A DNA stretch of 64,000 nucleotides from Macrostomum lignano (Eukaryota). This document shows, piece after piece, positions 1,017 to 51,996 of this stretch. Both the position numbers and the translations under genes were made by a program. The notes beneath the pieces were generated by a model. The model had not been told where the DNA came from and did not search any database. It worked only from the letters and a program-made list of their open reading frames with translations. The stretch is from assembly GCA_002269645.1 (NCBI GenBank), contig NIVC01000957.1, positions 248,001-312,000 on the forward strand, written 5' to 3'. Positions within the stretch are counted from its first letter, which is position 1, and each line of letters starts with the position of its first letter.

Positions 1017-1049
1017 TTCCCGCGGGTTTTCCAGCCCCCAAAACCTCAC

Positions 1050-2099: not shown

Positions 2100-2175
2100 C
2101 TGCGGGATTTTTTTGCTCACTGATTTAACTGCTTATCTGGGGCTCTATTGAGAAGGTAGAAATCGGCTGTAAAAC

Positions 2176-2660
<485 letters not shown>

Positions 2661-4133: not shown

Positions 4134-4161
4134 TTTCTGAGAATCTGGGTAGGCGACTCAC

Positions 4162-19219: not shown

Positions 19220-22200
19220 GTAAAAAATCATAGAAGCGTCATGTAAATATCATAGAAGCGTCATGTAAAAAATCATAGAAGCGTCATGTAAAAATCATAG
19301 AAGCGTCATGTAAAAATCATAGAAGCGTCATACAAAAATCATAGAAGCGTCATGTAAAAATCATAGAAGCGTCATACAAAACTCAGAGAAGCGTCATGTA
19401 AAAAATCATAGAAGCGTCATGTAAAAATCATAGAAGCGTCATGTAAATCATAGAAGCGTCATGTAAAAAATCATAGAAGCGTCATGTAAAAATCATAGAA
19501 GCGTCATGTAAAAATCATAGAAGCGTCATACAAAAATCATAGAAGCGTCATGTAAAAATCATAGAAGCGTCGTGTAAAAATCATAGAAGCGTCCTGTAAA
19601 AATCACAGAAGCGTCATGTAAAAATCATAGAATCGTCATGTAAAAAATCATAGAAGCGTCATACAAAAATCATAGAAGCGTCATACAAAAATCATAGAAT
19701 CGTCATGTAAAAATCATAGAAGCGTCATGTAAAAATCATAGAAGCGTCATACAAAAATCATAGAACCGTCATGTAAAAATCATAGAAGCGTCATACAAAA
19801 ATCATAGAATCGTCATGTAAAAATCATAGAAGCGTCATGTAAAAATCATAGAATCGTCATGTAAAAATCATAGAAGCGTCATGTAAAAAATCACAGAAGC
19901 GTCATGTAAATCATAGAAGCGTCATGTAAAAAATCATAGAAGCGTCATAAAAATTATAGAAGCGTCATGTAAAAATCATAGAAGCGTCATACAAAAATCA
20001 TAGAATCGTCATGTAAAAATCATAGAAGCGTCATGTAAAAATCATAGAAGCGTCGTGTAAAAATCATAGAAGCGTCATGTAAACAATCATAAAGCGTCAT
20101 GTAAAAAATTATACAAGCGTCATGTAAATATCATAGAAGCGTCATGTAAAAAATCATAGAAGCGTCATAAAAAATTATAGAAGCGTCATGTAAACAATCA
20201 TAGAAGCGTCATGTAAAAATCATAGAAGCGTCATGTAAACAATCATAGAAGCGTCATGTAAAAAACCATAGAAGCGTCATGTAAAAAATCATAAAAGCGT
20301 CATGAAAAAATCATAGAAGCGTCATGTAAACAATCATAGAAGCGTCATGTAAAAAATCATAGAAGCGTCATGTAAAAATCATAGAAGCGTCATGTAAAAA
20401 ATCATAGAAGCGTCATGTAAAAATCATAGAAGCGTCATGTAAAAATCATAGAAGCGTCATGTACATCATAGAAGCGTCATGTAAAAAATCATAGAAGTGT
20501 CATGTAAAAATCATAGAAGCGTCATGTAAAAATCATAGAAGCGTCATACAAAAATCATAGAAGCGTCATGTAAAAAATCATAGAAGCGTCATGTAAAAAT
20601 CATAGAAGCGTCATGTAAAAATCATAGAAGCGTCATACAAAAATCATAGAATTGTCATGTAAAAATCATAGAAGCGTCATACAAAAATCATAGAATCGTC
20701 ATGTAAAAATCATAGAAGCGTCATGTAAAAATCATAGAAGCGTCGTGTAAAAATCATAGAAGCGTCCTGTAAAAATCACAGAAGCGTCATGTAAAAATCA
20801 TAGAATCGTCATGTAAAAAATCATAGAGGCGTCATACAAAAATCATAGAATCGTCATGTAAAAATCATAGAAGCGTCATGTAAAAATCATAGAAGCGTCA
20901 TACAAAAATCATAGAAGCGTCATGTAAATCATAGAAGCGTCATGTAAAAAATCATAGAAGCGTCATACAAAAATCATTGAATCGTCATGTAAAAATCATA
21001 GAAGCGTCATACAAAAATCATAGAATCGTCATGTAAAAATCATAGAAGCGTCATGTAAAAAATCGTAGAAGCGTCATGTAAATCATAGAAGCGTCATGTA
21101 AAAAATCATAGAAGCGTCATAAAAATTATAGAAGCGTCATGTAAAAATCATAGAAGCGTCATACAAAAATCATAGAATCGTCATGTAAAAATCATAGAAG
21201 CGTCATGTAAAAATCATAGAAGCGTCGTGTAAAAATCATAGAAGCGTCGTGTAAAAATCATAGAAGCGTCATACAAAAATCATAGAACCGTCATGTAAAA
21301 ATCATAGAAGCGTCATACAAAAATCATAGAATCGTCATGTAAAAATCATAGAAGCGTCATGTAAAAATCATAGAAGCGTCCTGTAAAAATCACAGAAGCG
21401 TCATGTAAAAATCATACCGGTAGAATCGTCATGTAAAAAATCATAGAAGCGTCAATGTAAAAAATCATAGAAGCGTCAAGTAAACAATCATAGAAGCGTC
21501 ATGTAAATAATCATAAAAGCGTCATGTAAAAAATTATAGAAGCGTCATGTAAATATCATAGAAGCGTCATGTAAAAAATCATAGAAGCGTCATGTAAAAA
21601 TCATAGAAGCGTCATGTAAAAAATCATAGAAGCGTCATGTAAAAATCATAGAAGCGTCATGTAAAAATCATAGAAGCGTCATGTAAAAATCATAGAAGCG
21701 TCATGTAAAAAATCATAGAAGCGTCATGTAAATCATAGAAGCGTCATGTAAAAAATCACAGAAGCGTCATAAAAAATTATAGAAGCGTCATGTAAAAATC
21801 ATAAAAGCGTCATGTAAAAATCATAGAAGCGTCATACAAAAATCATAGAATCGTCATGTAAAAATCATAGAAGCGTCATGTAAAAATCATAGAAGCGTCA
21901 TGTAAAACATCATAGAAGCGTCATAAAAAATTATAGAAGCGTCATGTAAAAATCATAGAAGCGTCATACAAAAATCATAGAAGCGTCATGAAAAAAATCA
22001 TAAAAGCGTCATGTAAAAATCATAGAAGCGTCATGTAAAAATCATAGAAGCGTCATGTAAAAAATCATAGAAGCGTCATGTAAATCATAGAAGCGTCATG
22101 TAAAAAATCATAGAAGCGTCATAAAAAATTATAGAAGCGTCATGTAAAAATCATAGAAGCGTCATGTAAAAATCATAGAAGCGTCATACAAAAATCATAG

Positions 22201-25200
22201 AATCGTCATGTAAAAATCATAGAAGCGTCATGTAAACAATCATAGTAGCGTCATGTAAAAATCATAGAAGCGTCATAAAAAATTATAGAAGCGTCATGTA
22301 AAAATCATAGAAGCGTCATACAAAAGTCATTGAATCGTCATGTAAAAATCATAGAAGCGTCATGTAAAAATCATAGAAGCGTCGTGTAAAAATCATAGAA
22401 GCGTAATGAAAAAATCATAAAAGCGTCATGAAAAAATCATAGAAGCGCCATGAAAAAATCATAGAAGCGTCATGTAAACAATCATAGAAGCGTCACGTAA
22501 AATATCATAAAAGCGTAATGAAAAAATCATAGAAGCGTCATGAAAAAATCATAGAAGCGCCATGTAAATATCAGAGAAGCGTCATGTAAACAATCATAGA
22601 AGCGTCATGTAAACAATCATAGAAGTGTCATGTAAAAAATCATAGAAGTGTCATGTAAAAATCATAGAAGCGTCATGTAAACAATCATAGAAGCGTCATG
22701 TAAACAATCATAGAAGCGTCATGTAAAAAATCATAGAAGCGTCATGTAAACAATCATAGAAGTGTCATGTACAAATCATAGAAGCGTCATGTAAAAATCA
22801 TAGAAGCGTCATGTAAAAAATCATAGAAGCGTCATGTAAAAATCATAGAAGCGTCATGTAAAAATCATAGAAGCGTCATGTACATCATAGAAGCGTCATG
22901 TAAAAAATCATAGAAGTGTCATGTAAAAATCATAGAAGCGTCATGTAAAAATCATAGAAGCGTCATACAAAAATCATAGAAGCGTCATGTAAAAAATCAT
23001 AGAAGCGTCATGTAAAAATCATAGAAGCGTCATGTAAAAATCATAGAAGCGTCATACAAAAATCATAGAATTGTCATGTAAAAATCATAGAAGCGTCATA
23101 CAAAAATCATAGAATCGTCATGTAAAAATCATAGAAGCGTCATGTAAAAATCATAGAAGCGTCGTGTAAAAATCATAGAAGCGTCCTGTAAAAATCACAG
23201 AAGCGTCATGTAAAAATCATAGAATCGTCATGTAAAAAATCATAGAGGCGTCATACAAAAATCATAGAATCGTCATGTAAAAATCATAGAAGCGTCATGT
23301 AAAAATCATAGAAGCGTCATACAAAAATCATAGAAGCGTCATGTAAATCATAGAAGCGTCATGTAAAAAATCATAGAAGCGTCATACAAAAATCATTGAA
23401 TCGTCATGTAAAAATCATAGAAGCGTCATACAAAAATCATAGAATCGTCATGTAAAAATCATAGAAGCGTCATGTAAAAAATCGTAGAAGCGTCATGTAA
23501 ATCATAGAAGCGTCATGTAAAAAATCATAGAAGCGTCATAAAAATTATAGAAGCGTCATGTAAAAATCATAGAAGCGTCATACAAAAATCATAGAATCGT
23601 CATGTAAAAATCATAGAAGCGTCATGTAAAAATCATAGAAGCGTCGTGTAAAAATCATAGAAGCGTCGTGTAAAAATCATAGAAGCGTCATACAAAAATC
23701 ATAGAACCGTCATGTAAAAATCATAGAAGCGTCATACAAAAATCATAGAATCGTCATGTAAAAATCATAGAAGCGTCATGTAAAAATCATAGAAGCGTCA
23801 TGTAAAAATCATAGAAGCGTCATGTAAAAATCATACCGGTAGAATCGTCATGTAAAAAATCATAGAAGCGTCATGTAAAAAATCATAGAAGCGTCAAGTA
23901 AACAATCATAGAAGCGTCGTGTAAAAATCATAGAAGCGTCATGTAAAAAATTATAGAAGCGTCATGTAAATATCATAGAAGCGTCATGTAAAAAATCATA
24001 GAAGCGTCATGTAAAAATCATAGAAGCGTCATGTAAAAAATCATAGAAGCGTCATGTAAAAATCATAGAAGCGTCATGTAAAAATCATAGAAGCGTCATG
24101 TAAAAATCATAGAAGCGTCATGTAAAAAATCATAGAAGCGTCATGTAAATCATAGAAGCGTCATGTAAAAAATCACAGAAGCGTCATAAAAAATTATAGA
24201 AGCGTCATGTAAAAATCATAAAAGCGTCATGTAAAAATCATAGAAGCGTCATACAAAAATCATAGAATCGTCATGTAAAAATCATAGAAGCGTCATGTAA
24301 AAATCATAGAAGCGTCATGTAAAACATCATAGAAGCGTCATAAAAAATTATAGAAGCGTCATGTAAAAATCATAGAAGCGTCATACAAAAATCATAGAAG
24401 CGTCATGAAAAAAATCATAAAAGCGTCATGTAAAAATCATAGAAGCGTCATGTAAAAATCATAGAAGCGTCATGTAAAAAATCATAGAAGCGTCATGTAA
24501 AATATAGCGTCATGTAAAAATCATAGAAGCGTCATAAAAAATTATAGAAGCGTCATGTAAAAATCATAGAAGCGTCATGTAAAAATCATAGAAGCGTCAT
24601 ACAAAAATCATAGAATCGTCATGTAAAAATCATAGAAGCGTCATGTAAACAATCATAGTAGCGTCATGTAAAAATCATAGAAGCGTCATAAAAAATTATA
24701 GAAGCGTCATGTAAAAATCATAGAAGCGTCATACAAAAGTCATTGAATCGTCATGTAAAAATCATAGAAGCGTCATGTAAAAATCATAGAAGCGTCGTGT
24801 AAAAATCATAGAAGCGTAATGAAAAAATCATAAAAGCGTCATGAAAAAATCATAGAAGCGCCATGAAAAAATCATAGAAGCGTCATGTAAACAATCATAG
24901 AAGCGTCACGTAAAATATCATAAAAGCGTAATGAAAAAATCATAGAAGCGTCATGAAAAAATCATAGAAGCGCCATGTAAATATCAGAGAAGCGTCATGT
25001 AAACAATCATAGAAGCGTCATGTAAACAATCATAGAAGTGTCATGTAAAAAATCATAGAAGTGTCATGTAAAAATCATAGAAGCGTCATGTAAACAATCA
25101 TAGAAGCGTCATGTAAACAATCATAGAAGCGTCATGTAAAAAATCATAGAAGCGTCATGTAAACAATCATAGAAGTGTCATGTACAAATCATAGAAGCGT

Positions 25201-25455
25201 CATGTAAAAAATCATAGAAGCGTCATGTAAAGAATCATAGAAGTGTCATGTACAAATCATAGAAGCGTCATGTAAAAAATCATAGAAGCGTCATGTAAAC
25301 AATCATAGAAGTGTCATGTACAAATCATAGAAGCGTCATGTAAACAATCATAGAAGCCTCATATAAAAACTAATGAAAGTGTCATTTAAAAAATTAAGAA
25401 GCATCATGGAAGAATAAAAGAAGCGTCATGTAAAAATCAAAAGAAGCGTCATGTC
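19220..25455. repeat. Satellite array, about 22-bp unit GTAAAAATCATAGAAGCGTCAT (about 280 copies), with a 2419-bp higher-order duplication
   Basis: Continuous 20-23-bp units; rare variants recur at +2419; the array decays after about 25345. Confidence 0.97.
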
Positions 25456-31077: not shown

Positions 31078-31487
31078 CTAATTGGCATACAATGTGACTT
31101 CGGCAACGTTGATTTCTCGTCTTTCATAATCCGAATACCTTTGAATGATTACCACATATTTAATATTCGAACTAGAGCAGGTTTTGTGGTATGTAACGAT
31201 TTCATCAACATCGTATTCAAATGTACAGTCAACAATAACTTTCCGACCAGAATTAAGTAGTTTCAGCATCAGATTCTTGAATGACATGCGTGACTTTTTG
31301 TTCCGCCAGATGAGAAACCCTTTCACAGATGAAACTCGGTCGAGTTTGTACCCGAAATAGGTCCGGAACATTTCAGCGCCCTTTGGTACATGGTCTCTCA
31401 TAATTGCTGTTCCATATGTGTCCAAATCGCCATCAATAGTTTTTTCACATTCGCCAAAACTTATCCAACACCTCATGCGCAAATTGG
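31078..31487 (-). CDS. Left toxin-like paralog (copy A), last exon: C-terminal beta-sandwich-like tip domain
   Basis: ttcttcag acceptor at 31488 is in phase with the C|GTAAGT donor at 31572; homologous to 51581-51996 (C..T.D.D..TYG, G..IWR, LLNS, IKY, AEV..YA). Confidence 0.85.
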
Positions 31488-31572
31488 CTGAAGAATTTTA
31501 GAGTTATTGATAATAAAGGCCATATAAAAGCAACAAACAGAATATTGAAAATGCAATTACGCTCCTACTTAC

Positions 31573-34300
31573 GGTAACATGTATCCGTGCCAAAGGTACT
31601 CCCAGAGTCAGGGCATTGGTCACAATGCGTCATTCCGCTGTGACGACTAAGGGAAAACAAATTACAATATTCGCATTCTCGGGAACCTGATTCGCTGGCG
31701 TAGGTGCCAGCGGGACATTTCGAGCACTCGCTGCTGCCTGAGCTGTTAGAGAAAGTGCCTGCTGGGCACAGAGTGCAGTTAGCAGCGTTTCCAACTGAGA
31801 ATGAGCCTGCTTCGCAAAGCTGGCAAGAAGCGGAGCCTGCGTTACTCCAGCTTCCAGCAGGGCACTGGCTGCAGTTTGTTGAGCCCACTCGGTCAGCAAA
31901 TGTCCCAGAAGGACAAACGGTGCATTCCGATGCAGCAGCACCGGAATACTTCCCCAGCGGACACATTCTCTGTTCCGAACGGCCTTCCGTGTCGACGTAC
32001 CACCCTGGCTTGGAGCTCTTACAGTGCGTCTGGTTTGCCTGTGGCTGGTAGAATCCCCGAGGACACAGGGTGCAAGAAGCTGATCCGACTCGACTGGAAT
32101 AGCTGCCTTTGGCACAAAAAGTGCAGCTTACCGATCCCGCGCTGGGACTGAACGAGCCTGCAGGGCACTGGCTGCAGTTTGTTGAGGATATTAGGTACGC
32201 AAAGCTTCCAGCAGGGCACGTAGTGCAAGAAGCTGAGCCAGCGTGACTGGAATAGCTGCCTTTGGCACACGAAGTGCAATTTACCGATCCCGCACTGGGA
32301 CTGAACGAGCCTGCAGGGCACTTGGCGCAAGGGATGCCCTCGGCTGGACTGAACTCGCCCCTCTTGCAGTTGTTGGCGCAGCTCACTGAGACCTCAGCAC
32401 TCGACGTTCCAGCAGGGCAAGCAGTGCAGGATTTCTGACCTGACTTGTCGGCGAAGAACCCCGCAGAGCACAACTGGCACTGCGTCTGTCTCTCTGCTTT
32501 ATTGAACTGTCCGACTGGACATGGAGTGCACTCCGTTTGACCTCGCTGAGCTGCGAACAAGCCGGCACTGCAGGCCCCGCACGAATCAGATCCATAAAAC
32601 CTGCTCGCTGTTCCAACATGGCACTGCTGGCACTGTACCGATCCTGGCTTGGAAGCGAAATTTCCTGGACTGCAGAGCATGCAATTCACAGTCGTGTTTG
32701 ATGCAGAAATACTTCCAGGAGCGCATGGCAAGCAGTTATGATTTCCTGTTGTGTTCTTAAAAGTACCTGGTTGGCAGGGCACGCACAGATTTTCCTTGCT
32801 GTCACTCAGTTGGTAGCCAACTGGACACTCTGGCAAGCACTGCCCTGTCCTGACTCTCCTGCCCCCAATAGAATTCCACAATTCAACGCGCACATTGCGA
32901 CACTGGAAGCAGCTCGTGTCATCTTTTGCTAGATTGCAGTCGATGCACTCTTTGTGACAATCCAGGATGCAGTGACCATCAACCAGCTTGTAGTTATTGT
33001 TCAAACACTCCACCTGCGGCATGTCCTTGGTGAGGTGAATATCCATCAGCGACACAGACTTCGAGCCCGCTCCGAACGTGTAGAAAGACAGGCGGCTGTA
33101 CTGGCTGTCCGGTCGGAACTTGTACCCAGAGTAGACAGTGCCGATCTCGCTGTTCGAGCCCGCCTTACCGAACTGCATCAGAACTGATCCATTGGCCTGA
33201 TTCACACACAAGAAGTAGGACTGGTACAGGTTCTTGTCTCCAAGTGTCCCCATTCCCTTCTGATAGTCTCTCTTTTGCGGTTTCATTGCTTTGTAGAATG
33301 CCACTCCATCCATATTTATCTGCAGGTAGTACCATGTTGTGTGGTCTCTTGGTATTGACGCGAATATAACAAAGATGTCTCCAGCAGTCGCAGCCGTAAA
33401 GTAAAGGCAGTTTTCTTCCCTATCAGGGTCCAGTCTGTGAGAGTTCAACCACCGAACGTTGCACGGAATTGACGCCGCATCAGTCGAGTCTGTGCCTTTT
33501 TGCCCTTCTATCCGAGAAGCCCTAGCAACCGTGGTACCCTCTATCCAGTCTGGAAGGTTTGGGTTGCGGCGCTTTGATGCAATAAAGTCCAGCGGATCGA
33601 TATGGAAGAAGCCTGTCTCCTCCTTATAGGTGAGGATGATGCTCCAGATACAGATCTTAGTCTCAGCTGGCTTGAAGCCTTCAAGCTGACAGCCTTCGTA
33701 CAGGTGTGCATGATGGTGCCCTGGCTCGGTCGCAAACCACCTGTCTTTTAGATACGTCATCACATACTTGGCTTGCGATTTCAACAAGTTCGGAATATCC
33801 TGGGGCAGAACAAAGGAGATTAAAAACGGGGACTTCGTGAGCTGCAGAAACGTCAGTGTGTTGTTATTTGAGTTAAACACGTCGATCTTGGCCAGTGTAG
33901 AGCTCTCACAACCGGGTTGCCCTGCTTTCAACTCGTGCGAGGAGGTTGGGAAAGGACCTTCCGTCATGTACGCAGCTACGGCTTTCTCCAGTGAGAGTCT
34001 TCGTCTCTTTAGAGCGTTCTTAAAGTCTTGTTGGTTCTTGTATTTGCAGTAGATTTTAACCAATTTAGTTTTAGTCTTATTGTTAGCAAAGTAAGTCTCC
34101 TCATCGAGGTAGTAGCGACGACGAGTTTTGGGCTCCGTCAAAATATTTACTTTGCTTCCCGCACTTTCAGCCAGCCGGAAACAGGTCGTCCATGTTCATG
34201 TCGAACAGCTGATCTGGTCTTTTATATGGTCTTTTTCTGCAGCTTCAACTTGAAATCCAAGCAATGCAATTGCGATCACTGCAGCCAGACAGGCGTGCAT
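31573..34300 (-). pseudogene. Copy A main exon: signal peptide, MACPF deleted, beta domain, furin-like and ephrin-receptor-like (GCC2/GCC3) Cys-rich repeats; one in-frame TGA at 34198-34196
   Basis: ATG at 34300 gives MHACLAAVIAIALLGFQVEAAEKD; the same frame runs through a single TGA at codon 35 into the 858-aa ORF 31565..34141, which is nearly identical to copy B from 49259 onward. Confidence 0.85.
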
Positions 34301-35434
34301 TTTCGAAGCCAGCAAGTTGCTTTAGACGAGAATAAAACTCGAATGGTTTTGACGCTTCCTGAATCAGTTCGAGTCTGTTCTGGAGGGGTTTTGAAGGCAA
34401 CTATGAAAGTGTGAATTATCCACAAATATGCTAAAATTTTGAAGTGCTAAAATCACTTCAACAGGTGAGTGTGAGGTTAGAGTTACGTGAGGTGCCTAGA
34501 AGGATAGAGGGAGCCGATGGAAGGAGAGGGATGGGGAGGAGGGGGATGGGGAGGAGAGGGATGGGGAGGAGAGGGAGAAATATAAATGCCCGTGTGCCAG
34601 TCAGTCGCTAGGTGAGCAATGCTACCAGCTGCTTTTGCACGCGTCGACACAAAACCGACCTCATTCGAATTAAAGAATAAGAAATGATTTAAATTTGCTC
34701 AAATTCTGCAACTACCACGCCAGGAAACGAAATGTAGGTGCTATTTAAAATTCAAAAATCAATAAATAATCGTTGACATCCATAGCCAATACTTAGCGAT
34801 TTGAGTGCAGCCAGAAATTCAATACGGCTCAGCCTGAGAAGGAAAAGGGAGATCAGAATAAGAGTGAGGGCGGACACTTCAAATACAATCTTACTGAGTT
34901 ATTTACACAGAATGAAAATAGTAGCAGGGTATTGCTTAAGGGCATTAAGATTCATATGCCTCTGAAGAAAAGCATCCGAATAATATGCTGAAGCAGGAGC
35001 ATCACAGAGCACAGAGGAAGCTATGTGGGTTCAGCACAACACAGATAGCTCTGCACAGCCCATCTCGAGTGCAAGTGCAGCAAAATGAGAGCCAAAGCAG
35101 AACAGAAGCCTTCGGCCACAGACAAATCAGTGACACCAGCAACTGGCGACAACAGGTTCTCATTGAGTTCTCAACTCTGGAGCAGAGTCGGCAAACTCCG
35201 GCTTGCGGGCCGGGCCACACGCGGAACTGGAAGCGTCTCTATCAGGCCCTCGGGTCCTTTGAAATTTCACGATAGCAATCCTTCCCCTCGAGATTGGTGT
35301 CTCAGCTCTCTCTTTTCTCTCTTCTCTCTCCTCCCTCCTCTCTTCTCTCCTCCTCTCTTTTCTCTCCTCTCTCCCCTCTGCCCATCTCACCTCTCACTCA
35401 TTTTTCATCTCTTCTCTCTCCTCCCTTCACTCCC

Positions 35435-35723
35435 CAACCCCACTGAAGATGGCGCCCTTCCCAAGACACCCCACTGGAGATGGCGCCCTTCCCAGGACAC
35501 TCACTGGAGATGGCGCCTTTCCCAGGTCACCCCACTGGAGATGGCGCCCTTCCCAGGACACTCACTGGAGATGGCGCCCTTCCCAGGACACCCCACTAGA
35601 GATGGCGCCCTTCCCAGGACACCCCACTGAAGATGGCGCCCTTCCCAAGACACCCCACTGGAGATGGCGCCCTTCCCAGGACACCCCACTGGAGATGGCG
35701 CCCTTCCCAGGACACCCCACTAG
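35435..35723. repeat. 30-31-bp minisatellite GGAGATGGCGCCCTTCCCAGGACACCCCACT, about 9 copies
   Basis: Units at 35476, 35506, 35537, 35567 and onward; inverted homologue at 45186-45795. Confidence 0.93.
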
Positions 35724-38721
35724 ATAAGAGAGCGCTTGTCTGACTCGTTTTCTGTGCTTTTTGAGTGCGATTCGCGCACCCAGAAATTGTCATTCGTAAC
35801 CTGATTTTTGGTCAAATACGCCAATCTTTACATTGGCTTGGTAGAAGTTGGATCAGACTAAGGAACCGGTTCCTAAAGTGGCGGGAACCGTGGTGGGGTG
35901 GAAGGAGAACCTGGATGAGGTAGAAGTTAGAAGGGGTAGGGCTTGGGATGGAAGCAATAAGTATGAGAATTGAGTAGAAAGGTTCAGCAATAAAATGAGA
36001 AAAGTTTCGTGACGGCAACTTTGATGACTCACCTGAATGTGAATGCCGAGTTGGTCTCCCGACGAGATTCCTCCGCCTCGCTTCGCTGTCGAAGAGTCGT
36101 AAAACTTGCCGAGACGCCGAGCCGCATTTATGGGGCCGCTGCCGAGCCAGGAAGTTTCGAATCTTCGAGCTTTTCGAATTCCTGGTTGCTGCGGCTGGAA
36201 TTCGAGATAATTTTTATTTCGATACAGCCGCATAGAATTTTATTGAGAGATCCAACAACAGACCGAACATGTCATGTCAGTTTGAAGTTTAAAATTGAAT
36301 TGCAATTAGTTAATCGATATATTTAAAACTTAAATTAAAAAAAAACTTTTTGACTAATACAAAACCTAATCAGAAAATGAAAGTTTCAAAAACTTTAACT
36401 GTAAAAATGTGAAGCATTTCAAGTTTCGGAGTGCAGCTAATCAAAAATAATTTTTTTATTCAATTTTAATTCTTGCACCAAAATTCTGAAGTGAATTTTT
36501 TCCAATGGTGAAAATTCCAAGTCAGTTAAAATATACAAGAAATTTGGGCCTGCTATGCTCAATTGTTATCTGAGCAATGCCGCAATGCGAGGCAACGGGT
36601 TGGGACATGTCCGTCAGACCGTTGGGCAGCCATCTTGGCTGCAGGCCGATTGCTGCCAGCAGCCGCGCCTGTTGTGGGCTGGAGATTTTGCGGATCGGCT
36701 TCAGAGCAAATTGTGCTCACTTTATCTAGAATTAATCCTGCCAGAATTAACGCTGAGGTTCTATGAAAGGCTTCTATGAAGTACTTTGTCATGAAATAGC
36801 TTGTAATACGAAATATAGTGTCATACGAAATCGCATCTCATGAAAAGCATGTCATAAAATAGGTGTCTATATGAACCAGTATATCAGTCGTATTTGAAAG
36901 TCGGATTACTTTTGAGGTGAGCAAATACTCGTAAGTTCAATTAACTTCATTACTATTAATTAAAGATTTATCCTGGCGCACCTTCTAGCTGCGCATGCAC
37001 TGCCCGCTGGCCAACGACGGCGCTTCAGAGTTGAGTGATGATGCGAGCTCATGGAATCCAAGGCACTGAATAGCGCCTCGTAACACCGCTGCTTAAATGA
37101 TCCGTGCTACAGAAATCCGATATCTTGAGAGCATACTCGATGCACCGGCGATAGAACACTTATGCGTTCCTTACCAGCCAGGGACTACTCATTACTCCAT
37201 TCTCGGGACGGAAAACAACAAAACTTGGAGGCTTATTAATTGGATATGTTTTTATGAGCGTACCGCGGACACAAACTCACTGACTACAACTACAAGGTAG
37301 AACCTATCGAATCATTGCTTTCGAGGACTCAGTTATTAATAGACCGGCCTCCAAGTTATGTCGTTTTCCGTCCGGAGTATTAAGCAGTGCCTGTTACCGG
37401 CCTTCAGCTCATTTCTTAAGAAAGTTGGGTGCAGCCTCTTTCGACTACTTCAGTTGTTCATGTTCATCAGCCCTGTGGTGTCGGAAAATAGTTCAAAGTG
37501 GGGGGCATATAGGTTGGAGGGCTCTTACATTTTTGCAACCAAAGGGCAGCCCCAATCCCTGCGATAGTGCCGCCTGTCGCTGCGTGACAACCAGGCCAGC
37601 ACTCACTTGAGTTCGAAGTGCTCAGATTTTAAGTGATTTAAACACTGCGAAAAATTAGTGAGCTTAATCGATTCAATTCAATCAAGACGCAAGACAATAG
37701 GAAAGCAAGTTTATGATTTTAGTTCTCTAAATTCATTGCAGAAAAAGGATAACTGAAGTAATAATTCCCCACGACCACTGCAACGGATCGTCAATTTGCG
37801 TGCAACTTGCTGCAAGTCCAAGTCGCCGCTGCACTTCTGGTGCGTATGCGAGATCATTAATTGCTGTTCGCATTACCGCCGCGAGCCGTCCGGGTGTATA
37901 GTAGCTCTTCACATGCGGTTGTGCTGAAAATGACCTCGCAGCTGTAAGTTGCAACTGCAGTAACCTGATTGCCTCACAGTGTGCTCTGTCTGACAAATTT
38001 AAGCTACAGGCACAGTTGAGCGTTCAGATTTTTTTGCATTAATGTCAAGCGGATGATAAGCCATCAGCGACACAGGATTCGACATTGGTGGTCCTCCATT
38101 CGCAGCTCTAACAATAGTTTATCCAAGTTTCCTATTGTCAGAAAGCGTCTGATAAGCTATCTTATTAAAACGGCATTTTAATTCTCCCATGACGGCATCC
38201 ATTGCTGGGCAGTAATAAAATTCGTAGTAATCCTCCGGCTTTCACTGCCACATGCTAATTCTGATTTTTCCACAGCCTGGAAGACCTGCCCAGACGGATC
38301 GGGCATGTCAGTAGCAGGGGGAATGCGCACACTGCAGCAGAGAAAGTCACGGAATTATTACCGTAGGGCCTAATGAGAGAACATAGCCGCTGTTGTTTTA
38401 ATGCATTGCATAGACTCTGCCGCGGGAATCTAAAACAGTATTGAGCCGCGGGTTATAAAGTAAATTTTTTATATAGTTTGAAAATTTAACTTCCACCTAT
38501 TTTATTTGCCTCTTATCTGGTAGAAGTGGTAGAAGGGGTACCTCGAAAGGACACGCCTCGAGAGCCGGCACCCCTTCTCCTTTTTGAGTGCGATTTGCGC
38601 CCAGAAATTGTCATTTGCAACCAGAGTTTTGGTCCAAGTATGCGAATTTGGGTCTTGACATTTTTTAAACAAAGTCTTCTACGTGTAGTAAAGAAGAAGA
38701 ACGTAGACGCGTCTGCTCTTT

Positions 38722-39230
38722 GGCTCCGTCAGCCAGCTTGCCAGCCTGATTCAGCCGTACATCGACACGCTGACCCGGTATCTCGAGAGCAACAATCTCC
38801 GTCTCTCTCCTTCCCAATCGTCTGCAACCATCTTCTCCAGCTCTACTAATGAATTCTCTGCTCAAATGGCCCTTTCCGTCAATGGCACTAGCGTCAACTA
38901 CACGACTTCTCCAAAGATCCTCGGGGTCACGCTCGATCCCTTGATGAAGGGGCACCTTCACGCCAAAGCCACTGCTCAAAAGGTCTGGTCGGCCAACCAC
39001 GTCCTCAGAGCCCTTAGTGGCAGCAGCTGGGGGCGGGACAAGGAAACGCTGATCGTCACATACAAGCCTGTAGGCCTGTATTTCAACTACTGCGCCCCCC
39101 AGTCTAGTCTACTTTGCTCAGCAGCAGCAGTTGGAAACTCCTTCAACTGCTCAAAATGTGGCCCTCAGAGCCAACACTGGGTGCCATAGCTGCGCACCAA
39201 TTGGGTACCTGCACGAGAAAGCCTTTGACT
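38722..39230 (+). mobile_element. Non-LTR retrotransposon (LINE) reverse-transcriptase C-terminal fragment, degenerate
   Basis: LTRYLESNNLRLSPSQSSATIF...SPKILGVTLDP...HAK...NHVLRALSGSSWGRDKETLIVTYK matches the RT thumb region of LINE ORF2 (L.L...KS, KxLGVxxD, L.G..WG); frameshifted afterwards. Confidence 0.82.
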
Positions 39231-41121
39231 GCCTTCATTGCGAACTACTGACATGTCTCCGATTGACCTTTGGATTCGTCCCAATGACGTGATTGGTCTG
39301 CTTGGCATGCTGTTTCCAAGCCAGGGCAGCGTTCTGGACCGCCATTACTACACACACTTTTTCTGGATAGACAGAGTTGGGGTTGCTGGGCCGAAAACAG
39401 GAGCATCAATTTGGCTATGCGTCAATCAGTAGCCACGAGAGCAGTCATCTAATTCAGCCGCACCCAGCAGAGCTACAAATGCAAGTGTTGGGGTCTGTGG
39501 CTTCACCAATCACGCAGATTAAATAGCTCCGGTCATGATCGATTCTTCGAGAAGTTTTCTGCTGCTGTTGTGTCTGCTGACTGTCGCAATTCCACGTGCG
39601 GCCGTCCTCAATGTTGAGACATTGAGCTTCTGGCCTTCAATACGGCACTTTTGCCTCAGTCGGTCCGCCTACAGAGCCCAGCTCAACGGAATCTGACGCT
39701 GGCGTCAACACCACCACCGAAGACACCGAAGACATGTGGAACCAGCAGTCAACAGGGCAACCAGTCAGTCAGCAAATCTAGGACGCCGACGTCTACAGCC
39801 GCTCAAAGTGGTAAGACTTACGCGGATGGTGACGACGACACGGACGTCGACTGCATAGATCCAAGGGCAGTAGAAAGACTGCAGAGAAGTCTGGCCTAGT
39901 CAGTAGTGAACACAAATTCTCTCAGCGGCTTAAGCATTCTGTCGATGCTCAGTGCACGGCAGAACTGTGACGCTGTGCAAAGAATCCGTTGACTGGAAAG
40001 GCTGATTCTACCACTTCTGGAAGGCATCAACACATCCTTGCGTACGTCATCTGCAGCATCGAAGTTTACAACAACCACGGACTTTGAGCCAATTGACTCC
40101 TGGGAGCGTTACATTCGCTTCATTTCATCAAGGCAGATTCAAAGCAGCTTGGTGAAGGATTAGAATAAGTAATAGTCTGATTTTTACCATATGAGGGTAT
40201 GAGAGTATATGAGGAAGACAGGGATGAGCCATGAACATATAGCTAATGTGATAAATAGTCTTTACAATCGGTCTCTAATTCCTTCCCAGAGGCCGAACGC
40301 CCTCTACCAGGATGCTTTGTCTGGTTAATTGGAGCGGCCGAGGCGGTGTGCTGAAACACTGCAAGGCGCAGCTTCCAGACTGCACCCTGACTGGAAAACA
40401 GTTGAGATTCGAGAACGCCGTGAAATTATTTTTTGGTAAGTCAGCGAGTCACCCTACTAATTTCAGTAGGCACTACAGAGCGTAAACAAAAGATATGTTG
40501 AAGTACTTGAAATTCAGGCTAAAAAATAAAAAAATCTACAAACGCTGTAAAAGACTTATTTCCGGCGGACCCAGTCAAAAAGTCCATAGAGTCCATAGTC
40601 GCATGGTACAATCTGTTGAAGGTGTCGACGGCGTCGGGATAATGACAGAATGCTTGAGACTAGCTGAGAATGTCCAGCAGTTGAGGCTTGCCCACTGTCG
40701 AGGCTTGATCGGCGAAACTAGAGAAATTTGGGGTTCATAGTCACCTAGTGCCACCAGCTGAAGGTTCAGAAGCTCTACCTGGGTAAAGGCCAATAATCAA
40801 CAAAGTCAAAGCTGATGCAGACACATGTGGTCGACGTGCTGATGAAATTTGGAGACTTGGCAAGGCTGCACTGAGACGCAGTGCTGATTGGCGCACAGGG
40901 GTGTATTGAATACACTGGCGCTTATGGGAAAAATCCGACCTTCTGGCAGAATCGTCGAATATCTCGACGGTCCGGAAAGCTGGCGACGACTTTATTTTTG
41001 TTTGAGAAAATGCGCAACAAAAAGTTGGCCCGCTTTCTAAAATCTCGTGTGCCTGCGTTGCTCCGTTCTGGCGCAGCAAAGAAATTGTCAGGATAGTTCG
41101 ACGGGAGGCAAATGGCTTGGT

Positions 41122-43946
41122 ATTCCTGCTAATAATACTAGCTCGTATTTACTGAACAGCTTGCTTGAACTGATTATACTAATTCCTGCTAATAATACTA
41201 GCTCGTATTTACTGAACAGCTTGCTTGAACTGATTATACTAATTCCTGCTAATAATACTAGCTCGTATTTACTGAACAGCTTGCTTGAACTGATTATACT
41301 AATTCCTGCTAATAATACTAGCTCGTATTTACTGAACAGCTTGCTTGAACTAATTATACTAATTCCTGCTAATAATACTAGCTCGTATTTACTGAACAGC
41401 TTGCTTGAACTAATTATACTAATTCCTGCTAATAATACTAGCTCGTATTTACTGAACAGCTTGCTTGAACTAATTATACTAATTCCTGCTAATAATACTA
41501 GCTCGTATTTACTGAACAGCTTGCTTGAACTGATTATACTAATTCCTGCTAATAATACTAGCTCGTATTTACTGAACAGCTTGCTTGAACTGATTATACT
41601 AATTCCTGCTAATAATACTAGCTCGTATTTACTGAACAGCTTGCTTGAACTGATTATACTAATTCCTGCTAATAATACTAGCTCGTATTTACTGAACAGC
41701 TTGCTTGAACTGATTATACTAATTCCTGCTAATAATACTAGCTCGTATTTACTGAACAGCTTGCTTGAACTGATTATACTAATTCCTGCTAATAATACTA
41801 GCTCGTATTTACTGAACAGCTTGCTTGAACTAATTATACTAATTCCTGCTAATAATACTAGCTCGTATTTACTGAACAGCTTGCTTGAACTGATTATACT
41901 AATTCCTGCTAATAATACTAGCTCGTATTTACTGAACAGCTTGCTTGAACTAATTATACTAATTCCTGCTAATAATACTAGCTCGTATTTACTGAACAGC
42001 TTGCTTGAACTAATTATACTAATTCCTGCTAATAATACTAGCTCGTATTTACTGAACAGCTTGCTTGAACTAATTATACTAATTCCTGCTAATAATACTA
42101 GCTCGTATTTACTGAACAGCTTGCTTGAACTGATTATACTAATTCCTGCTAATAATACTAGCTCGTATTTACTGAACAGCTTGCTTGAACTGATTATACT
42201 AATTCCTGCTAATAATACTAGCTCGTATTTACTGAACAGCTTGCTTGAACTGATTATACTAATTCCTGCTAATAATACTAGCTCGTATTTACTGAACAGC
42301 TTGCTTGAACTAATTATACTAATTCCTGCTAATAATACTAGCTCGTATTTACTGAACAGCTTGCTTGAACTAATTATACTAATTCCTGCTAATAATACTA
42401 GCTCGTATTTACTGAACAGCTTGCTTGAACTAATTATACTAATTCCTGCTAATAATACTAGCTCGTATTTACTGAACAGCTTGCTTGAACTGATTATACT
42501 AATTCCTGCTAATAATACTAGCTCGTATTTACTGAACAGCTTGCTTGAACTGATTATACTAATTCCTGCTAATAATACTAGCTCGTATTTACTGAACAGC
42601 TTGCTTGAACTAATTATACTAATTCCTGCTAATAATACTAGCTCGTATTTACTGAACAGCTTGCTTGAACTAATTATACTAATTCCTGCTAATAATACTA
42701 GCTCGTATTTACTGAACAGCTTGCTTGAACTGATTATACTAATTCCTGCTAATAATACTAGCTCGTATTTACTGAACAGCTTGCTTGAACTAATTATACT
42801 AATTCCTGCTAATAATACTAGCTCGTATTTACTGAACAGCTTGCTTGAACTAATTATACTAATTCCTGCTAATAATACTAGCTCGTATTTACTGAACAGC
42901 TTGCTTGAACTAATTATACTAATTCCTGCTAATAATACTAGCTCGTATTTACTGAACAGCTTGCTTGAACTGATTATACTAATTCCTGCTAATAATACTA
43001 GCTCGTATTTACTGAACAGCTTGCTTGAACTGATTATACTAATTCCAGCTAATAATACTAGCTCGTATTTACTGAACAGCTTGCTTGAACTGATTATACT
43101 AATTCCTGCTAATAATACTAGCTCGTATTTACTGAACAGCTTGCTTGAACTGATTATACTAATTCCTGCTAATAATACTAGCTCGTATTTACTGAACAGC
43201 TTGCTTGAACTAATTATACTAATTCCTGCTAATAATACTAGCTCGTATTTACTGAACAGCTTGCTTGAACTAATTATACTAATTCCTGCTAATAATACTA
43301 GCTCGTATTTACTGAACAGCTTGCTTGAACTAATTATACTAATTCCTGCTAATAATACTAGCTCGTATTTACTGAACAGCTTGCTTGAACTAATTATACT
43401 AATTCCTGCTAATAATACTAGCTCGTATTTACTGAACAGCTTGCTTGAACTGATTATACTAATTCCTGCTAATAATACTAGCTCGTATTTACTGAACAGC
43501 TTGCTTGAACTAATTATACTAATTCCTGCTAATAATACTAGCTCGTATTTACTGAACAGCTTGCTTGAACTGATTATACTAATTCCTGCTAATAATACTA
43601 GCTCGTATTTACTGAACAGCTTGCTTGAACTGATTATACTAATTCCTGCTAATAATACTAGCTCGTATTTACTGAACAGCTTGCTTGAACTGATTATACT
43701 AATTCCTGCTAATAATACTAGCTCGTATTTACTGAACAGCTTGCTTGAACTGATTATACTAATTCCTGCTAATAATACTAGCTCGTATTTACTGAACAGC
43801 TTGCTTGAACTAATTATACTAATTCCTGCTAATAATACTAGCTCGTATTTACTGAACAGCTTGCTTGAACTAATTATACTAATTCCTGCTAATAATACTA
43901 GCTCGTATTTACTGAACAGCTGGCTTGAACTGATTATACTAATTTC
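41122..43946. repeat. Near-perfect 60-bp tandem array, about 47 copies, in the spacer of the inverted duplication
   Basis: Unit ATTCCTGCTAATAATACTAGCTCGTATTTACTGAACAGCTTGCTTGAACT(G/A)ATTATACTA; one G/A dimorphic site plus a single T>A at 43047. Confidence 0.99.
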
Positions 43947-45185
43947 TGACAATTTTAATTAGTCTAAATTTTTGTCAGCTCCTGCGTAATTTTAAGATTT
44001 GTTGCCTACAGCCGTTACGTGTTAAATATTAATGCCATTTCTAATATCCATTTTTTTAATTTAAATTTTCTTTATATCTTCTACGAGCTATCTAGCTCGA
44101 TCTGTACACGAAGAGCCGGCGACCGATAAGGTACGTATATTTGTACTATCGCAATAGTGCACTGAGTACGCTCTAGAGAACGCAGAGAAATGATTGAGGC
44201 TTCAGACAAATTCGGTTGAGAAAATCTGCGCTAAAGAATTTGACTTCTTAAAGCAACTTGTGGCTCTCAAGAGAGTGAGCTATGCACTTAAGTTGTAGTA
44301 TTGTCTGGCTGACAGATGTAAATCAGTGTACGTGCGTTACGTGATAGTATACAGCATGCACATTCACAACATCGCGCGTTTGATTGGCGCATTTTGTACA
44401 ATTTCATACAAGAACTCATAATTGCACCAATGGAAAAATTAAAATTAAGAAATGTAGCGAAAATGATAAAATTTTGTAGAAATTAATTTATTTTTTATTA
44501 GATGCACTCAGCGATTGGAAATTCTTTACATTATTCAGTTAAAAATCTTGAAACTTTTCTTTGCTGATAGAGTTTTGTAGAAGTTGAAAAAGTTTTTTGA
44601 ATTTCAGTTTACAAAAATACCGATTAACTAATTGCAATTCAATTTCAAACTTCAAACTGACATGACATGTTCGGTCTGTTGTTCGATCTCTCAATTAAAT
44701 TCCATGCCGCTGTATCGAATAAAAATTATCTCGAATTCCAGCTGCAGCAACCAGGAATTCGAAAAATTTGGAAACTCGGAAATTCCTGGCTCGGCAGCGG
44801 CCCCATAAATGCGGCTCGGCGTCTCGGCAAGTTTTGCGACTCTTCGACAGCGAAGCGAGGCGGAGGAATCTCGTCAGGAGACCAACTCGGCATTCAGGTC
44901 TGGTGAGTCATTAAAATTGCCGTCACTAAACTTTTTTTATTGCTGAACCCTCCAACTCTATTTTCATAATTATTGTTTCCATCCCAAACACTACCCCTTC
45001 TACCTTCTATCCCATCCCGGTTCCTGGCACTTTCGGAACCGGTTCCTGAGTCTGATCCAAATTTACCAAGCCAATGTGAAGATTGGCGTATTTGGCCAAA
45101 AAAAGTTACGAATGACAATTTCTGGGTGTGCGAATCGCACTCAATAAGCACAGAAACGGTTCAGACAGGCGCTCTCTTACGAGTA

Positions 45186-45795
45186 TCCAGTGGGGTGTCC
45201 TGGGAAGGGCGCCATCTTCAGTGCGATGTCCTGGGAAGGGTGCTATCTCCAGTGGGGTGTCTTGGGAAGGGCGCCATCTCCAGTGAGGTGTCCTGGGAAG
45301 GGCGCCATATTCAGTGGGGTGTCCTGGAAAGGGCGCCATCTCCAGTGGGGTGTCCTGGGAAGGGCGCCATCTTCAGTGGAATGTCCTCGGAAGGGCGCCA
45401 TCTGCATTTGGGTGTCCTGGGAAGGGCGCCATCTTCAGTGGGGTGTCCTGGGAAGGGCGCCATCTCCAGTGGGGTGTCCTGGGAAGGACGCCATCTCCAG
45501 TGGGGTGTCCTGGGAAGGGCGCCATCTCCAGTGGAGTGTCATGGGAAGGGCGCCATCTCCAGTGGGGTGTCCTGGGAAGGGCGCCATCTCCAGTGGAGTG
45601 TCATGGGAAGGGCGCCATCTCCAGTGGAGTGTCATGGGAAGGGCGCCATCTCCAGTGGGGTGTCCTGGGAAGGGCGCCTTCTCCAGTGGCGTGTCCTGGG
45701 AAGGGCGCCTCTCCAGTGGGATGTCCTGGTAAGGGCGCCATCTCCAGTGGAGTGTCCCGGGAAAAGCGCCCTATCCAGTGGGATGTCCTGGGAAG
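45186..45795. repeat. 31-bp minisatellite (reverse complement of the 35435 array), about 19-20 copies
   Basis: Unit CTCCAGTGGGGTGTCCTGGGAAGGGCGCCAT; it explains the overlapping ORFs in 44973..45929. Confidence 0.94.
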
Positions 45796-46219
45796 GATTA
45801 AATTCGAGTGAAAAAGTATATTCTCCACTCGTAGAACAGAATCAAAAAGTTCTAAGATTGCGTGGCCATCGGGGAGGCAAAGGGTGGCAAAGCATGTGCG
45901 CCCCCTTGTCAGCTGGCTTCGCACACTGAAAATAGTGGGTAGTGAATTAAGTCCAGCTGAAAAAAACTTTGCGGATATTCGCTGCAGTGTCTGAAATTTA
46001 TACCAAATTTGTTATTCAACAGCCGGTAGCAAAGATGAAGAGGTCAGCTGCAGTTCCAACGCGTGAACATGCAGCGTAAAGTTGGACATGTGAGAAGCAG
46101 GGTGACTTTATGTTGATTCTGGCCGGCGACTTTTTCTTTAGCGACTGTCCTTGGGCTTGATATGTGGTCTGAGCAAAGCAACCCTACAGATTGGATGGCA
46201 CTAACGACAAAAGATAGAA

Positions 46220-46795
46220 AGAAAGATTGGCGGGTAAAGAAGGGGAGAGAGGGAAGAGGCGAAAAAAAGGAAAAGAAATGACGAGACAGAGGAAAGAGAA
46301 AAGGGAAGTGAGAGGTGAGAAAAGGTGGGGAGAGAAGAGGTAGAAAGATAAGTAAGTAATGATATAGAGAGAGAAGAGAGAGGAAAGAAAAGAGAGAAGA
46401 GAAAAAAGAGGAGAGAAGATGGGAGAGAGAAGAGATAGATCAGTGGGAGATAAAGGGGAAGAAGGGAGAGAGGTGAGAAAGGAGAGGATAGAAGAGGAGA
46501 GAAAGCAGAGAGGATAGAGGAGTAAGAGGTGAGATGGGGAGAGAAGCGAGAGAAGAGAGAAGAGAGAGGAGAGAATAGTTGATTGAGAAGGGGGAAAAGA
46601 GATGAGAGAGGAGGGGAGAGAGGAGGGGAGAGAGGAGAGAGGAAATAAAAGTGAGAGGAGAGATTGGGAGAGAGGGGAGAGAAGAAAGGAAAGAGACGAT
46701 TGATAGGATTAGAGTAAGTAGAAATTGGAGAGGGGAGAGAATAATAGAGAAAGGGGGAGGGAGAAGCGTGGAGAGAGGAGAGATGAGAGAGAGAG
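46220..46795. repeat. Polypurine GA-rich low-complexity tract
   Basis: Almost exclusively G/A; a shorter CT-rich counterpart lies at about 35305-35430. Confidence 0.85.
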
Positions 46796-47467
46796 GGCTG
46801 AAAAGAGACACCAACCGTGAGCAGGCTGGATTGCTATTGTGAAGTTTCACCGGACCCGAGGACCGCATAGAGAGGCTTCGTGTGCCGTGCGTGGCGAGCG
46901 GGCCGGAGTTTCCCGACCCCTGATCCAGAGTAAAAAACCCTATTGAATCAGTCAATAGATTTGTAAAATATTTTGTTTTCTGACGTGGCAGTTGCATAAA
47001 TTTATCAAATTTAAATAATTTCTTCGAACGACGTCGGTTTTATGTTGACGCGTGCAAATTCAGTTGGTAGCGTGGCTCGCCTAAGGACTGACTGGCACAC
47101 GGCCCTCTGCACAATTTCTCCCATCCGTCTCCTCCCAACCCCCTCCTCTGAATCACTCTCCTCCCAACCCCCTCCTCCCCATCCCTCTCCTCTCCATCTC
47201 TCTCATCTCCATCCCTCTCCTCCCCATCTCTCTCATCTCCATCACTCTCCTCCCCATCCCTCTCCTTCTGATCCCTCTCCTTCCCTCTATCTTTCTAACC
47301 ACCTAACGTAACCAACTCACCTGTTAAAATAATTTTAGCACTTAAAAACTTTAGTACATTGGAAAATACAAACTTTCATATTTTCTATCAACCCCCCCCC
47401 CAGAACCGACTCGAACTGATTCAAGAAGCGTCAAAACCATTCCAGTTTTACTACCGTCTGAAGCAAA

Positions 47468-51508: not shown

Positions 51509-51580
51509 GTAAGTAATTGCGCTTTCCAGAGTTTGTTTATTACTTTTGTTTGGCTTTTTGCTTATCCTAAATTTTTTCAG

Positions 51581-51996
51581 CCAAGTTGCCCATGAAGTGC
51601 GATGCGAGCTTTGACAAATGTGAAAGAACTGTTGATAACGATGTGAGCACATACGGAGTAATCAATTTTGGAAACCGGTATGGAGCTGGAGGACCTGATG
51701 AATTATCCTATTTGCAGTACAGACTGGACAAAGCGGCAACTGTGAGAGGATTTATCATCTGGCGCAAAAGAAATACCTCCGGCTCTTCTGCTGTCCCTTT
51801 GCTGGAATTCACACTATTAAATTCTGAAAAAAACTTTATTAATAGTTGTAAAACCAGCGCTGATATTCTTCGTCAGTACTCAATGTACGATTGCTTTGGT
51901 GCGGATATAAAATATTTGTTGATTGCTAAAACTGAATCCAGTAATTACGTGCACAATATCGCCGAAGTTGGTGTGTACGCCTACCTTGCCGAGTAA
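51581..51996 (+). CDS. Copy B last exon: C-terminal tip domain, out of frame with the main ORF as assembled
   Basis: ttttcag acceptor at 51580; open 136-aa frame homologous to 31078-31487; the ancestral frame HCDLCPDSGTTFGTGKCH|PKLPMKC is visible one frame off at 51459-51508. Confidence 0.8.

Follow-up and report, generated by a model that had tools for sequence, protein, structure and literature searches.

How can two neighbouring genes be nearly identical over some 640 codons and yet end in last exons that share only about a third of their residues? The question is raised by a window of 64,000 nucleotides (the whole stretch of DNA that was analysed) from the Macrostomum lignano assembly Mlig_3_7 (GCA_002269645.1, contig NIVC01000957.1; positions are given in window numbering unless another locus is named), in which two copies of one flatworm gene family lie head to head, copy A on the minus strand and copy B on the plus strand. 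A full-length member of the family comprises, from the N- to the C-terminus, a signal peptide, an N-terminal region, a MACPF domain, a beta-rich middle domain of ~370 aa, an Ephrin_rec_like stalk and a tip; the 3' end of such a gene encodes 6-10 Ephrin_rec_like Cys-rich repeats, followed by a phase-1 intron and the tip as a last exon of its own (~135 aa). From the divergence along A and B, and from a comparison of six copies in the assembly, concerted evolution by non-allelic gene conversion very probably produced the mosaic.

Divergence between copies A and B

The two copies and the palindrome in which they lie consist of the following parts (copies C, D, A' and B', named here for comparison, are located elsewhere in the assembly and are listed further below; dS, synonymous divergence).

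31411-36453 and 44485-51657, palindrome arms, with the spacer at 36454-44484
35437-36453, no strand assigned, non-coding part of the A-side arm, 86% to B-side 45475-44485
34229-34300, minus strand, start codon of A (34300-34298) and signal-peptide stretch MHACLAAVIAIALLGFQVEAAEKD, aligned with B, C and D, 2.8% from B
34171-34228, minus strand, deletion scar of A with filler, MACPF remnant and stop
33008-34141, minus strand, middle domain of A (TEPK to DMPQVE), homogenised core, including the 18 nt for WSIILT (33646-33629)
32204-33007, minus strand, proximal stalk of A with Ephrin_rec_like repeats, 3' end of the 98% block, dS to B 0.046
31901-32203, minus strand, extra stalk of A, 101 codons (two Cys-rich repeats), in A, A', C and D, not in B and B'
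31573-31900, minus strand, distal stalk of A, outside the A-B homogenised block, dS to B 0.32
31488-31572, minus strand, intron of A, phase-1 GT-AG, 85 nt, splice as in PAA74317.1
31078-31487, minus strand, tip exon of A, 135 aa, open, stop 31080-31078, predicted F5/8-type-C / F-type-lectin-like
47483-47554, plus strand, signal-peptide stretch of B, start codon position not ATG
47555-49258, plus strand, N-terminal region and MACPF of B, Pfam match 48488-49180, region not in A
49259-51178, plus strand, homogenised core of B (middle domain and proximal stalk), 18-nt deletion at 49753/49754, common to C
51179-51508, plus strand, distal stalk of B, 303-nt deletion junction at 51178/51179
51509-51580, plus strand, intron of B, GT-AG, 72 nt, with its splice sites
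51581-51996, plus strand, tip exon of B, 137 aa, open in its own frame, cut off from the upstream frame, predicted to be of the same fold family

Alignments were made segment by segment; a global MAFFT alignment of the arms set the upstream sequence of A against the MACPF region of B. The two genes form an inverted repeat in which 32157-34169 pairs with 51225-49231, the identity being 97% if gaps are counted and 98% if they are not. Over the 640 codons shared from TEPK to mid-stalk (A 34141-32204, B 49259-51178) the codon alignment contains 15 amino-acid and 32 nucleotide differences, besides one 18-nt indel (WSIILT, A 33646-33629). The last exons (A 31487-31078, B 51581-51996) have open frames in both copies; they are 34% identical (88 differences over 133 residues) and have in common two Cys and the motifs TYG, IWR, LLNS, IKY and AEV. 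Divergence between A and B is 0.13 in the far upstream non-coding sequence, 0.18 in the proximal upstream sequence and 0.03 in the signal-peptide coding stretch; dS is 0.041 in the core, 0.32 in the distal stalk (the intron diverges by 0.33) and 0.75 in the tip, beyond which the 3' flanks are unalignable. Synonymous differences occupy 17 of 423 sites in the core compared to 40 of 84 in the tip (Fisher p = 1e-22), and the steps in dS over core, distal stalk and tip are significant at p = 6e-8 and 1e-22. A preliminary description of this DNA had counted about 14 differing residues plus a 6-aa indel in a core of about 640 aa, last exons that were open and about 30% identical with these motifs kept, about 100 extra Cys-rich residues in A (101, at 32203-31901) and flanks more diverged than the core, and these counts agree with the measurements. 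Since dS is not uniform along the gene, the first observation that the same description had named as speaking against a mosaic is not what was found, and the mosaic is confirmed. The ratio of nonsynonymous to synonymous divergence (dN/dS) of 0.24 in the core indicates that the body evolved under purifying selection.

The abrupt end of the similar block coincides with a difference in stalk length. In the B-type genes identity falls from 98% to ~85% exactly at the 303-nt deletion, between two CP(A/S)G(S/T)FAD repeats, and the same repeated coding motif stands on both sides of the extra stalk of A. The deletion is common to B and B' and therefore old, serving as an edge of homology. That the copies differ in stalk length, as had been described, holds; the "extra" residues are not a gain in A, the shorter stalk being a 303-nt loss in the B lineage. 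A single unequal exchange that would have given both the short stalk of B and the mosaic boundary was considered and rejected, as B' has the same 303-nt deletion, which is older than the subgenome split. On the A side, the block of high identity with C and D extends to ~31700, ~130 nt short of the donor site.

Six copies and the origin of the mosaic

The six copies compared represent three tip types (A, B and C/D), each in two homeologous copies (A/A', B/B' and C/D). The four that lie outside the window are listed here.

Copy C, NIVC01004190.1, Mlig021963g3, in-frame stop in the MACPF region
Copy D, NIVC01002877.1, Mlig027274g1, 1538 aa, open throughout, C tip type, collinear with C through both flanks
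Copy A', NIVC01002678.1, Mlig029702g1, full length (ATG, MACPF, WSIILT, long stalk), genomic A-type tip exon intact
Copy B', NIVC01002678.1, 5.4-kb insertion, 4-nt deletion in a B-type tip

The pairing of homeologs is visible at the 3' ends and beyond. Collinearity between A and A' extends over 13 kb (95.8%) and continues through the 3' flank into the 22-nt satellite that both have, and B and B' are collinear out to 54373 at 94.7%. The tip exons differ by 1.0% between A and A', 2.7% between B and B' and 2.7% between C and D, compared to 39-44% between tip types (41-44% for the A tip against the B and C types), and distances in the intron and the 3' flank pair the six copies as the tip does. 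The intron of A is identical in A' and 28% different from that of B; the distal stalk of A is 3.4% from A' and 12-17% from other tip types.

The core groups the same copies in another way. In its 5' half the distances are 1.5% for A-B, 1.5% for A-C, 1.1% for B-C and 2.6% for A'-B', and the core distances between homeologs are larger (A-A' 4.1-4.9%, B-B' 3.6-4.1%, C-D 3.4-3.6%). A homeolog pair is supported by only one of the 58 informative sites of the core, the main splits being A'+B' (16 sites), A+B+C (11), A+B (10), A'+D (6) and B'+D (5), whereas homeolog pairs are supported by 282 of the 289 informative sites in intron, tip and 3' flank. Where B and D differ, copy C has the B state at 52 core sites and the D state at 18; in the tip it has the B state at 6 sites and the D state at 216 (Fisher p = 4e-35 for the contrast between core and tip). 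The same pattern extends through the N-terminal and MACPF region (B-C 1.9%, A'-B' 2.9%, B-B' 3.4%), where dS is 0.038 for B-C and 0.085 for B-D. Furthermore, of the six copies only B and C are without the 18 nt encoding WSIILT; A, A', B' and D have them, and W(N/S)IILT is found in distant paralogs. The deletion is a shared derived marker of B and C, and supports exchange between them. Separate phylogenies had been proposed as a check; over the six copies, the groupings of core and tip are fully discordant. These groupings, together with the steps in dS, bear out the suggestion of recent gene conversion in the core on top of an old duplication, and they indicate that conversion acted after the two sets of copies had separated, and in both sets.

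The pattern points to the following course of events. At least three ancient tip lineages (the A, B and C/D types) are present, each with homeologous copies in a neopolyploid genome, and the stretch from signal peptide to mid-stalk has been copied over and over between genes that differ in tip type. Such conversion was commonest between linked genes, yet reached a copy on another contig, and tracts into B-type genes ended at the old 303-nt stalk deletion. As an outcome, the bodies cluster by contig or subgenome at 1-3% divergence, and the tips, introns and 3' flanks stay in deep lineages, ~40% apart in nucleotides. Most derived sites are indeed common to linked pairs (10 for A+B and 16 for A'+B', the latter two being ~85 kb apart), and proximity may help conversion. 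The preliminary description had gone further and proposed that the inverted geometry favours it; this part falls away, since copy C, on another contig, is as near to A and B (1.1-1.5%) as these are to each other, and the inverted layout is therefore not required.

A mosaic of two parts would also be expected in a single gene pair if a recently duplicated body had captured existing tip exons (exon shuffling) rather than been converted between old paralogs, and swapping of modules over deep time (Kringle, SRCR, C-type lectin, CUB) is seen in the family. We regard this as unlikely: every tip type occupies a locus of its own, with its own intron, 3' flank and homeolog, and these loci must be older than the subgenome split; the bodies were regrouped after that split, in both sets; and in the non-coding arms upstream, A and B diverge by 13-18% rather than 4%. 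Discrete private markers (32 substitutions and indels of 18 nt, 303 nt, 20 nt and 1.6 kb) are kept by the copies, their grouping is structured (A+B+C versus A'+B'(+D)) with no uniform blur, and the boundaries of the blocks are sharp and coincide in B and B'; all of this speaks against an artefact of assembly or polishing, by which near-identical cores would have been collapsed or cross-polished in a neopolyploid genome. Cross-mapping of reads would, moreover, have been impossible at the original 70-85% identity, and 98% could not have been obtained in this way. Such an artefact is very improbable, even though 93% of read pairs map to multiple loci and some paralogs are erroneously represented in Mlig_3_7 (PMC10733133), and although the deposited gene models show cross-mapping between paralogs.

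That no recombination took place at all, purifying selection holding the body of an ordinary old duplicate as a fast tip diverged, would agree with the dN/dS of 0.24 in the core and with a tip that outpaces the body family-wide. However, synonymous divergence itself is ~18-fold different between core and tip, the non-coding intron and flanks obey the same strata, and the core and tip trees contradict each other across six copies, which leaves this explanation with almost no probability.

Several points weigh against gene conversion as set out here, or limit it. Six copies cannot resolve the direction or the number of conversion events. The homeologous contig differs in structure (a truncated copy, X, is present in addition, and A' is 75 kb distant), and the assignment of A' as the homeolog of A is drawn from tip and 3' flank only. 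The Mlig_3_7 assembly is hard to resolve (PMC10733133), and the single-base lesions in B and C could be assembly errors, which makes them provisional.

State of the copies and their surroundings

Copy A as assembled is damaged: its signal peptide cannot join the remainder of the gene. It retains the ATG and 24 signal-peptide codons, which run into a scar consisting of a 14-nt filler (34228-34215) and 44 nt left over from the end of the MACPF region (34214-34171). This remnant is 100% identical to B 49166-49209 (tblastn recovers 34 residues), and it is followed by a 20-nt deletion private to A at 34171/34170. The damage to both copies had escaped the preliminary description. Copy A is not a MACPF paralog: B 47555-49165 (1611 nt, the N-terminus and the entire MACPF domain) has no counterpart in A, the signal-peptide frame terminates at the stop 34198-34196, and Pfam gives no MACPF (PF01823) match in copy A. 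The stretch deleted from A is retained intact in its homeolog A'. The A open reading frame (ORF) of 858 codons from 34141 has no ATG upstream, and the deposited model (PAA74317.1, here P0031; BOX15_Mlig023775g1, 934 aa) begins at an internal Met. The stalk of A gives 10 stretches of PF07699 (E = 1.1e-52). A short intron that would restore the frame (34243-34141, by inspection) was rejected, as the sole GT before the stop, with the two AG sites checked, meets a stop again.

Copy B as assembled is likewise damaged, having no initiator ATG and a frameshift ahead of the tip. At 47483-47485, where A, C, D, A' and B' have their initiator ATG, B has another codon, and upstream of 47483 no in-frame ATG was found. 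A spliced leader that supplies the AUG is a known flatworm mechanism; as a source of the start of B it has little in its favour, the two upstream AG acceptor candidates checked by eye both being out of frame. A 1-nt deletion private to B near 51449/51450 shifts the frame for the final 20 codons of the stalk and for the tip exon. The tip of B is otherwise 2.7% from B' and 39-44% from other tip types, and PF07699 matches six stretches of the stalk (E = 1.8e-30). The MACPF domain of B is clear (PF01823, 60.9 bits against a gathering cut-off of 21.5, E = 2.4e-16, ORF residues 341-571), and is also recorded for C, D and A'. The signature motif of MACPF proteins, (Y/W)-G-(T/S)-H-(F/Y)-x6-G-G, is present in B as WGTHFIRSGKFGG, starting at residue 415 of the ORF. 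Ahead of the MACPF core (B ~48310-48450) lies a Gly/Ala-rich hydrophobic stretch, GFNLGAIGGIVVGAIGAIAGGPAGAALGATLGGAVGG, which is kept in B, C, A', B' and the distant paralogs P0002, P0004 and P0005; ~129 nt of it are gone from D, and P0003 is without such a stretch.

Altogether, A' and D look intact and A, B, B' and C are broken. Four broken and two intact copies fit the decay of redundant copies in a neopolyploid, the M. lignano genome having three paralogous copies at ~2% divergence (PMC10733133). A deposited gene model is present for A (PAA74317.1) and none for B; the model of A lies on NIVC01000957.1, a record to which window positions 21078-43967 are 100% identical. Among the deposited proteins, P0022 omits WSIILT though the DNA of copy D (L002) has the 18 nt, and P0177 has an aberrant C-terminus though the genomic tip exon of A' (L004) is intact; transcripts of one paralog seem to have been assigned to another. 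Since the deposited models mix paralogs and several copies are broken, expression or RNA interference work must use copy-specific tip sequences.

The third copy on the homeologous contig, X (L005 1-878; NIVC01002678.1, from ~45.5 kb onward), faces B' in inverted orientation from the other side of the same spacer. Its 5' truncation is unlike that of A: ~109 aa of the MACPF domain are kept, without signal peptide and N-terminus, and the full-length A' is 75 kb away. That A arose by a crossover in which a truncated copy like X and a copy like A' took part is not supported, since the truncation of X differs in this way and X is without the 20-nt deletion and the filler of A.

Tandem repeats are unusually abundant across the window. 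An array of a 22-nt unit occupies 19223-25454 (6.2 kb, 281 copies, 88% matches); the same satellite is found 3' of A' (L004 20428-24769, ~91%), and a relative of it, at ~75% identity, upstream of D (L002 5045-5669). The centre of the spacer (41122-43948) consists of 47 copies of a 60-nt unit at 99% identity, with long ORFs open on both strands because of the repeat, and the 60-nt repeat also occurs in the spacer beside B' (L005 3487-4033, 94%). Arrays of a 31-nt repeat lie as mirror images in the non-coding arms (35437-35721, 9 copies; 45186-45796, 20 copies). Further minisatellites with units of 22-53 nt are located in 1-8900 and 57459-57930, and an ATCT microsatellite of 500 nt at 2176-2675. 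Past the 3' end of A, at a distance of 2.3 kb, a piggyBac-type transposase (PF13843; 27250-28813, minus strand) is split over two overlapping ORFs and is probably frameshifted. An ORF for a DEAH/RHA-type helicase (11241-15566, minus strand) runs uninterrupted for 1441 codons, with DEAD, Helicase_C and OB_NTP_bind domains.

Tip domain, function and comparison with known systems

What kind of domain the tips encode was addressed by structure prediction and by profile searches. The AlphaFold2 model of the A tip (predicted local distance difference test, pLDDT, 70) is all-beta, and its top Foldseek matches are the F-type lectin domain of lectinolysin and pneumococcal fucose-binding modules, followed by F5/8C, CBM32 and APC10 (E ~1e-4, TM scores of 0.5-0.54, a moderate match only). 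A profile of seven tips, searched against the PDB, gave the F-type lectin modules 2j22 (3e-5) and the lectinolysin lectin domain (1e-4), and the F5/8C domain 3nng (1.2e-4). Against a representative library the tip profile produced 467 matches, the top ones outside the family being proteins with many tandem F5/8C domains that are strong in Pfam; a search of a word-indexed protein database with the tip profile returned P0029 only, and the exhaustive representative search recovered the family. Weak Pfam matches occur in two to three of the seven family tips (PF00754, 5.8e-4; PF22633, 3.7e-3). At superfamily level the assignment of the tip as F5/8-type-C / F-type-lectin-like holds, judging from the model and the profiles, and the discoidin/galactose-binding-like fold that had been expected is borne out at this level by AlphaFold2 with Foldseek, by the PDB profile and by the representative search.

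The tips had also been described as hypervariable, and in this respect the measurements differ. Between tip types dS is 0.75-1.0 and near-saturated, with dN/dS of 0.5-0.9 (0.43 for C-D); no positive selection on the tips is evident from a dN/dS of 0.5-0.9 at near-saturated dS, and homeologous tips are only 1.0-2.7% apart. By these values the tip types are ancient and currently stable lineages, not hypervariable ones. Across the family the tip changes more quickly than the body; between B and P0003, for instance, identity is 68% in the middle domain and 21% in the tip. For the middle domain there is no Pfam match, and its AlphaFold2 model (pLDDT 55, predicted TM score 0.39) has weak matches to concanavalin-A-like lectins only (E 2e-3 or weaker, TM ~0.2).

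By analogy of domain content, the intact members may be secreted, lectin-guided pore formers, in which the tip would choose the glycan, the MACPF domain would make the pore and the stalk would serve as a spacer; we give this reading about an even chance. Three points weigh against it: it is derived from domain content alone; Pfam does not call the A tip, with no match at E up to 5; and the fucose-binding motif of F-type lectins, H-x(~26)-R-x-D-x4-(R/K), is absent from the A tip by inspection, where R-N-K, not R-x-D, follows the sole candidate His. The R-T-D-C-C core is kept only in the tip of P0004. A product of stalk and tip only is not absurd, given that the family members P0008 and P0055 are without MACPF yet have their own signal peptide. 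A wider reading, which we consider doubtful, would be a repertoire of lectin-aimed pore formers: conversion would keep the killing and stalk scaffold uniform, at least three discoidin-like tips would be held as target specificities, and copies that are broken or without MACPF, like A, would survive as sequence donors or as soluble lectins made of stalk and tip. If this were true, the polyploid genome would be a natural replicate for how a specificity exon stops conversion tracts.

Concerted evolution is seen at this locus with unusual clarity and is replicated internally, there being two homeologous sets, a body regrouped by location and three deep tip lineages. It also draws attention to an unstudied bilaterian MACPF family with lectin-like ends (in flatworms, amphioxus and an annelid), whose members could serve this laboratory model flatworm as effectors of innate immunity or of attack on prey. 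Literature searches that combined MACPF with Ephrin_rec_like found no papers, and those that combined Macrostomum with gene conversion found nothing relevant.

The best protein matches of the copy B ORF (47468-51595) are M. lignano MACPF proteins, followed by proteins of amphioxus and Owenia at 30-35% identity. The alignments with these uncharacterised proteins, from amphioxus (Branchiostoma) and from the annelid Owenia, cover 62-95% of B, through MACPF, middle domain and stalk, and we take such MACPF / Ephrin_rec_like proteins to be the true relatives of the family outside flatworms. They end in mixed modules (SRCR, C-type lectin, CUB, EGF, F5/8C), not in one divergent discoidin-like exon. 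In the protein relatives compared, the scaffold is constant and the C-terminal modules are variable across the whole family, with unrelated modules such as Kringle (P0002, P0005) or SRCR, C-type lectin and CUB (amphioxus). The design of conserved scaffold and variable end, which had been likened to that of polymorphic toxins, is accordingly found in the whole family; the likeness to polymorphic toxin systems is one of layout only, and their defining features are lacking. In polymorphic toxins the variable C-terminal domain is the toxin and is paired with a cognate immunity gene. In the flatworm genes it is a lectin-like binding domain that varies, and the effector domain, MACPF, belongs to the constant part; the window was found to contain neither a small partner gene downstream nor orphan tips.

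Closer in working principle to what is proposed here is perivitellin-2 of Pomacea, in which a MACPF chain is reportedly disulfide-linked to a tachylectin chain encoded by a second gene, a lophotrochozoan pore former delivered by a lectin; its lectin has the tachylectin fold, not the discoidin/F-type fold, and there is no Ephrin_rec_like stalk. Lectinolysin, a cholesterol-dependent cytolysin of Streptococcus mitis and a member of the MACPF/CDC superfamily (CDC, cholesterol-dependent cytolysin), contains the lectin domain that the tip matches best in structure and in profile, a fucose-binding module that directs the cytolysin to its target. It differs in being bacterial, in having its lectin N-terminal and in the fucose-binding His/Arg motif, which is present there and absent in the flatworm tips; the resemblance is one of design, not of descent. 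For the mode of evolution, the nearest parallel is provided by the clusters of vertebrate immune-receptor and plant resistance genes, in which concerted evolution is combined with a specificity segment that escapes conversion, and tracts end at heterologies. The flatworm genes show the same likeness within a genome plus one segment of deep lineages; here, in contrast to those clusters, the pattern is replicated in the two subgenomes of a neopolyploid, and several of the participating copies are broken.

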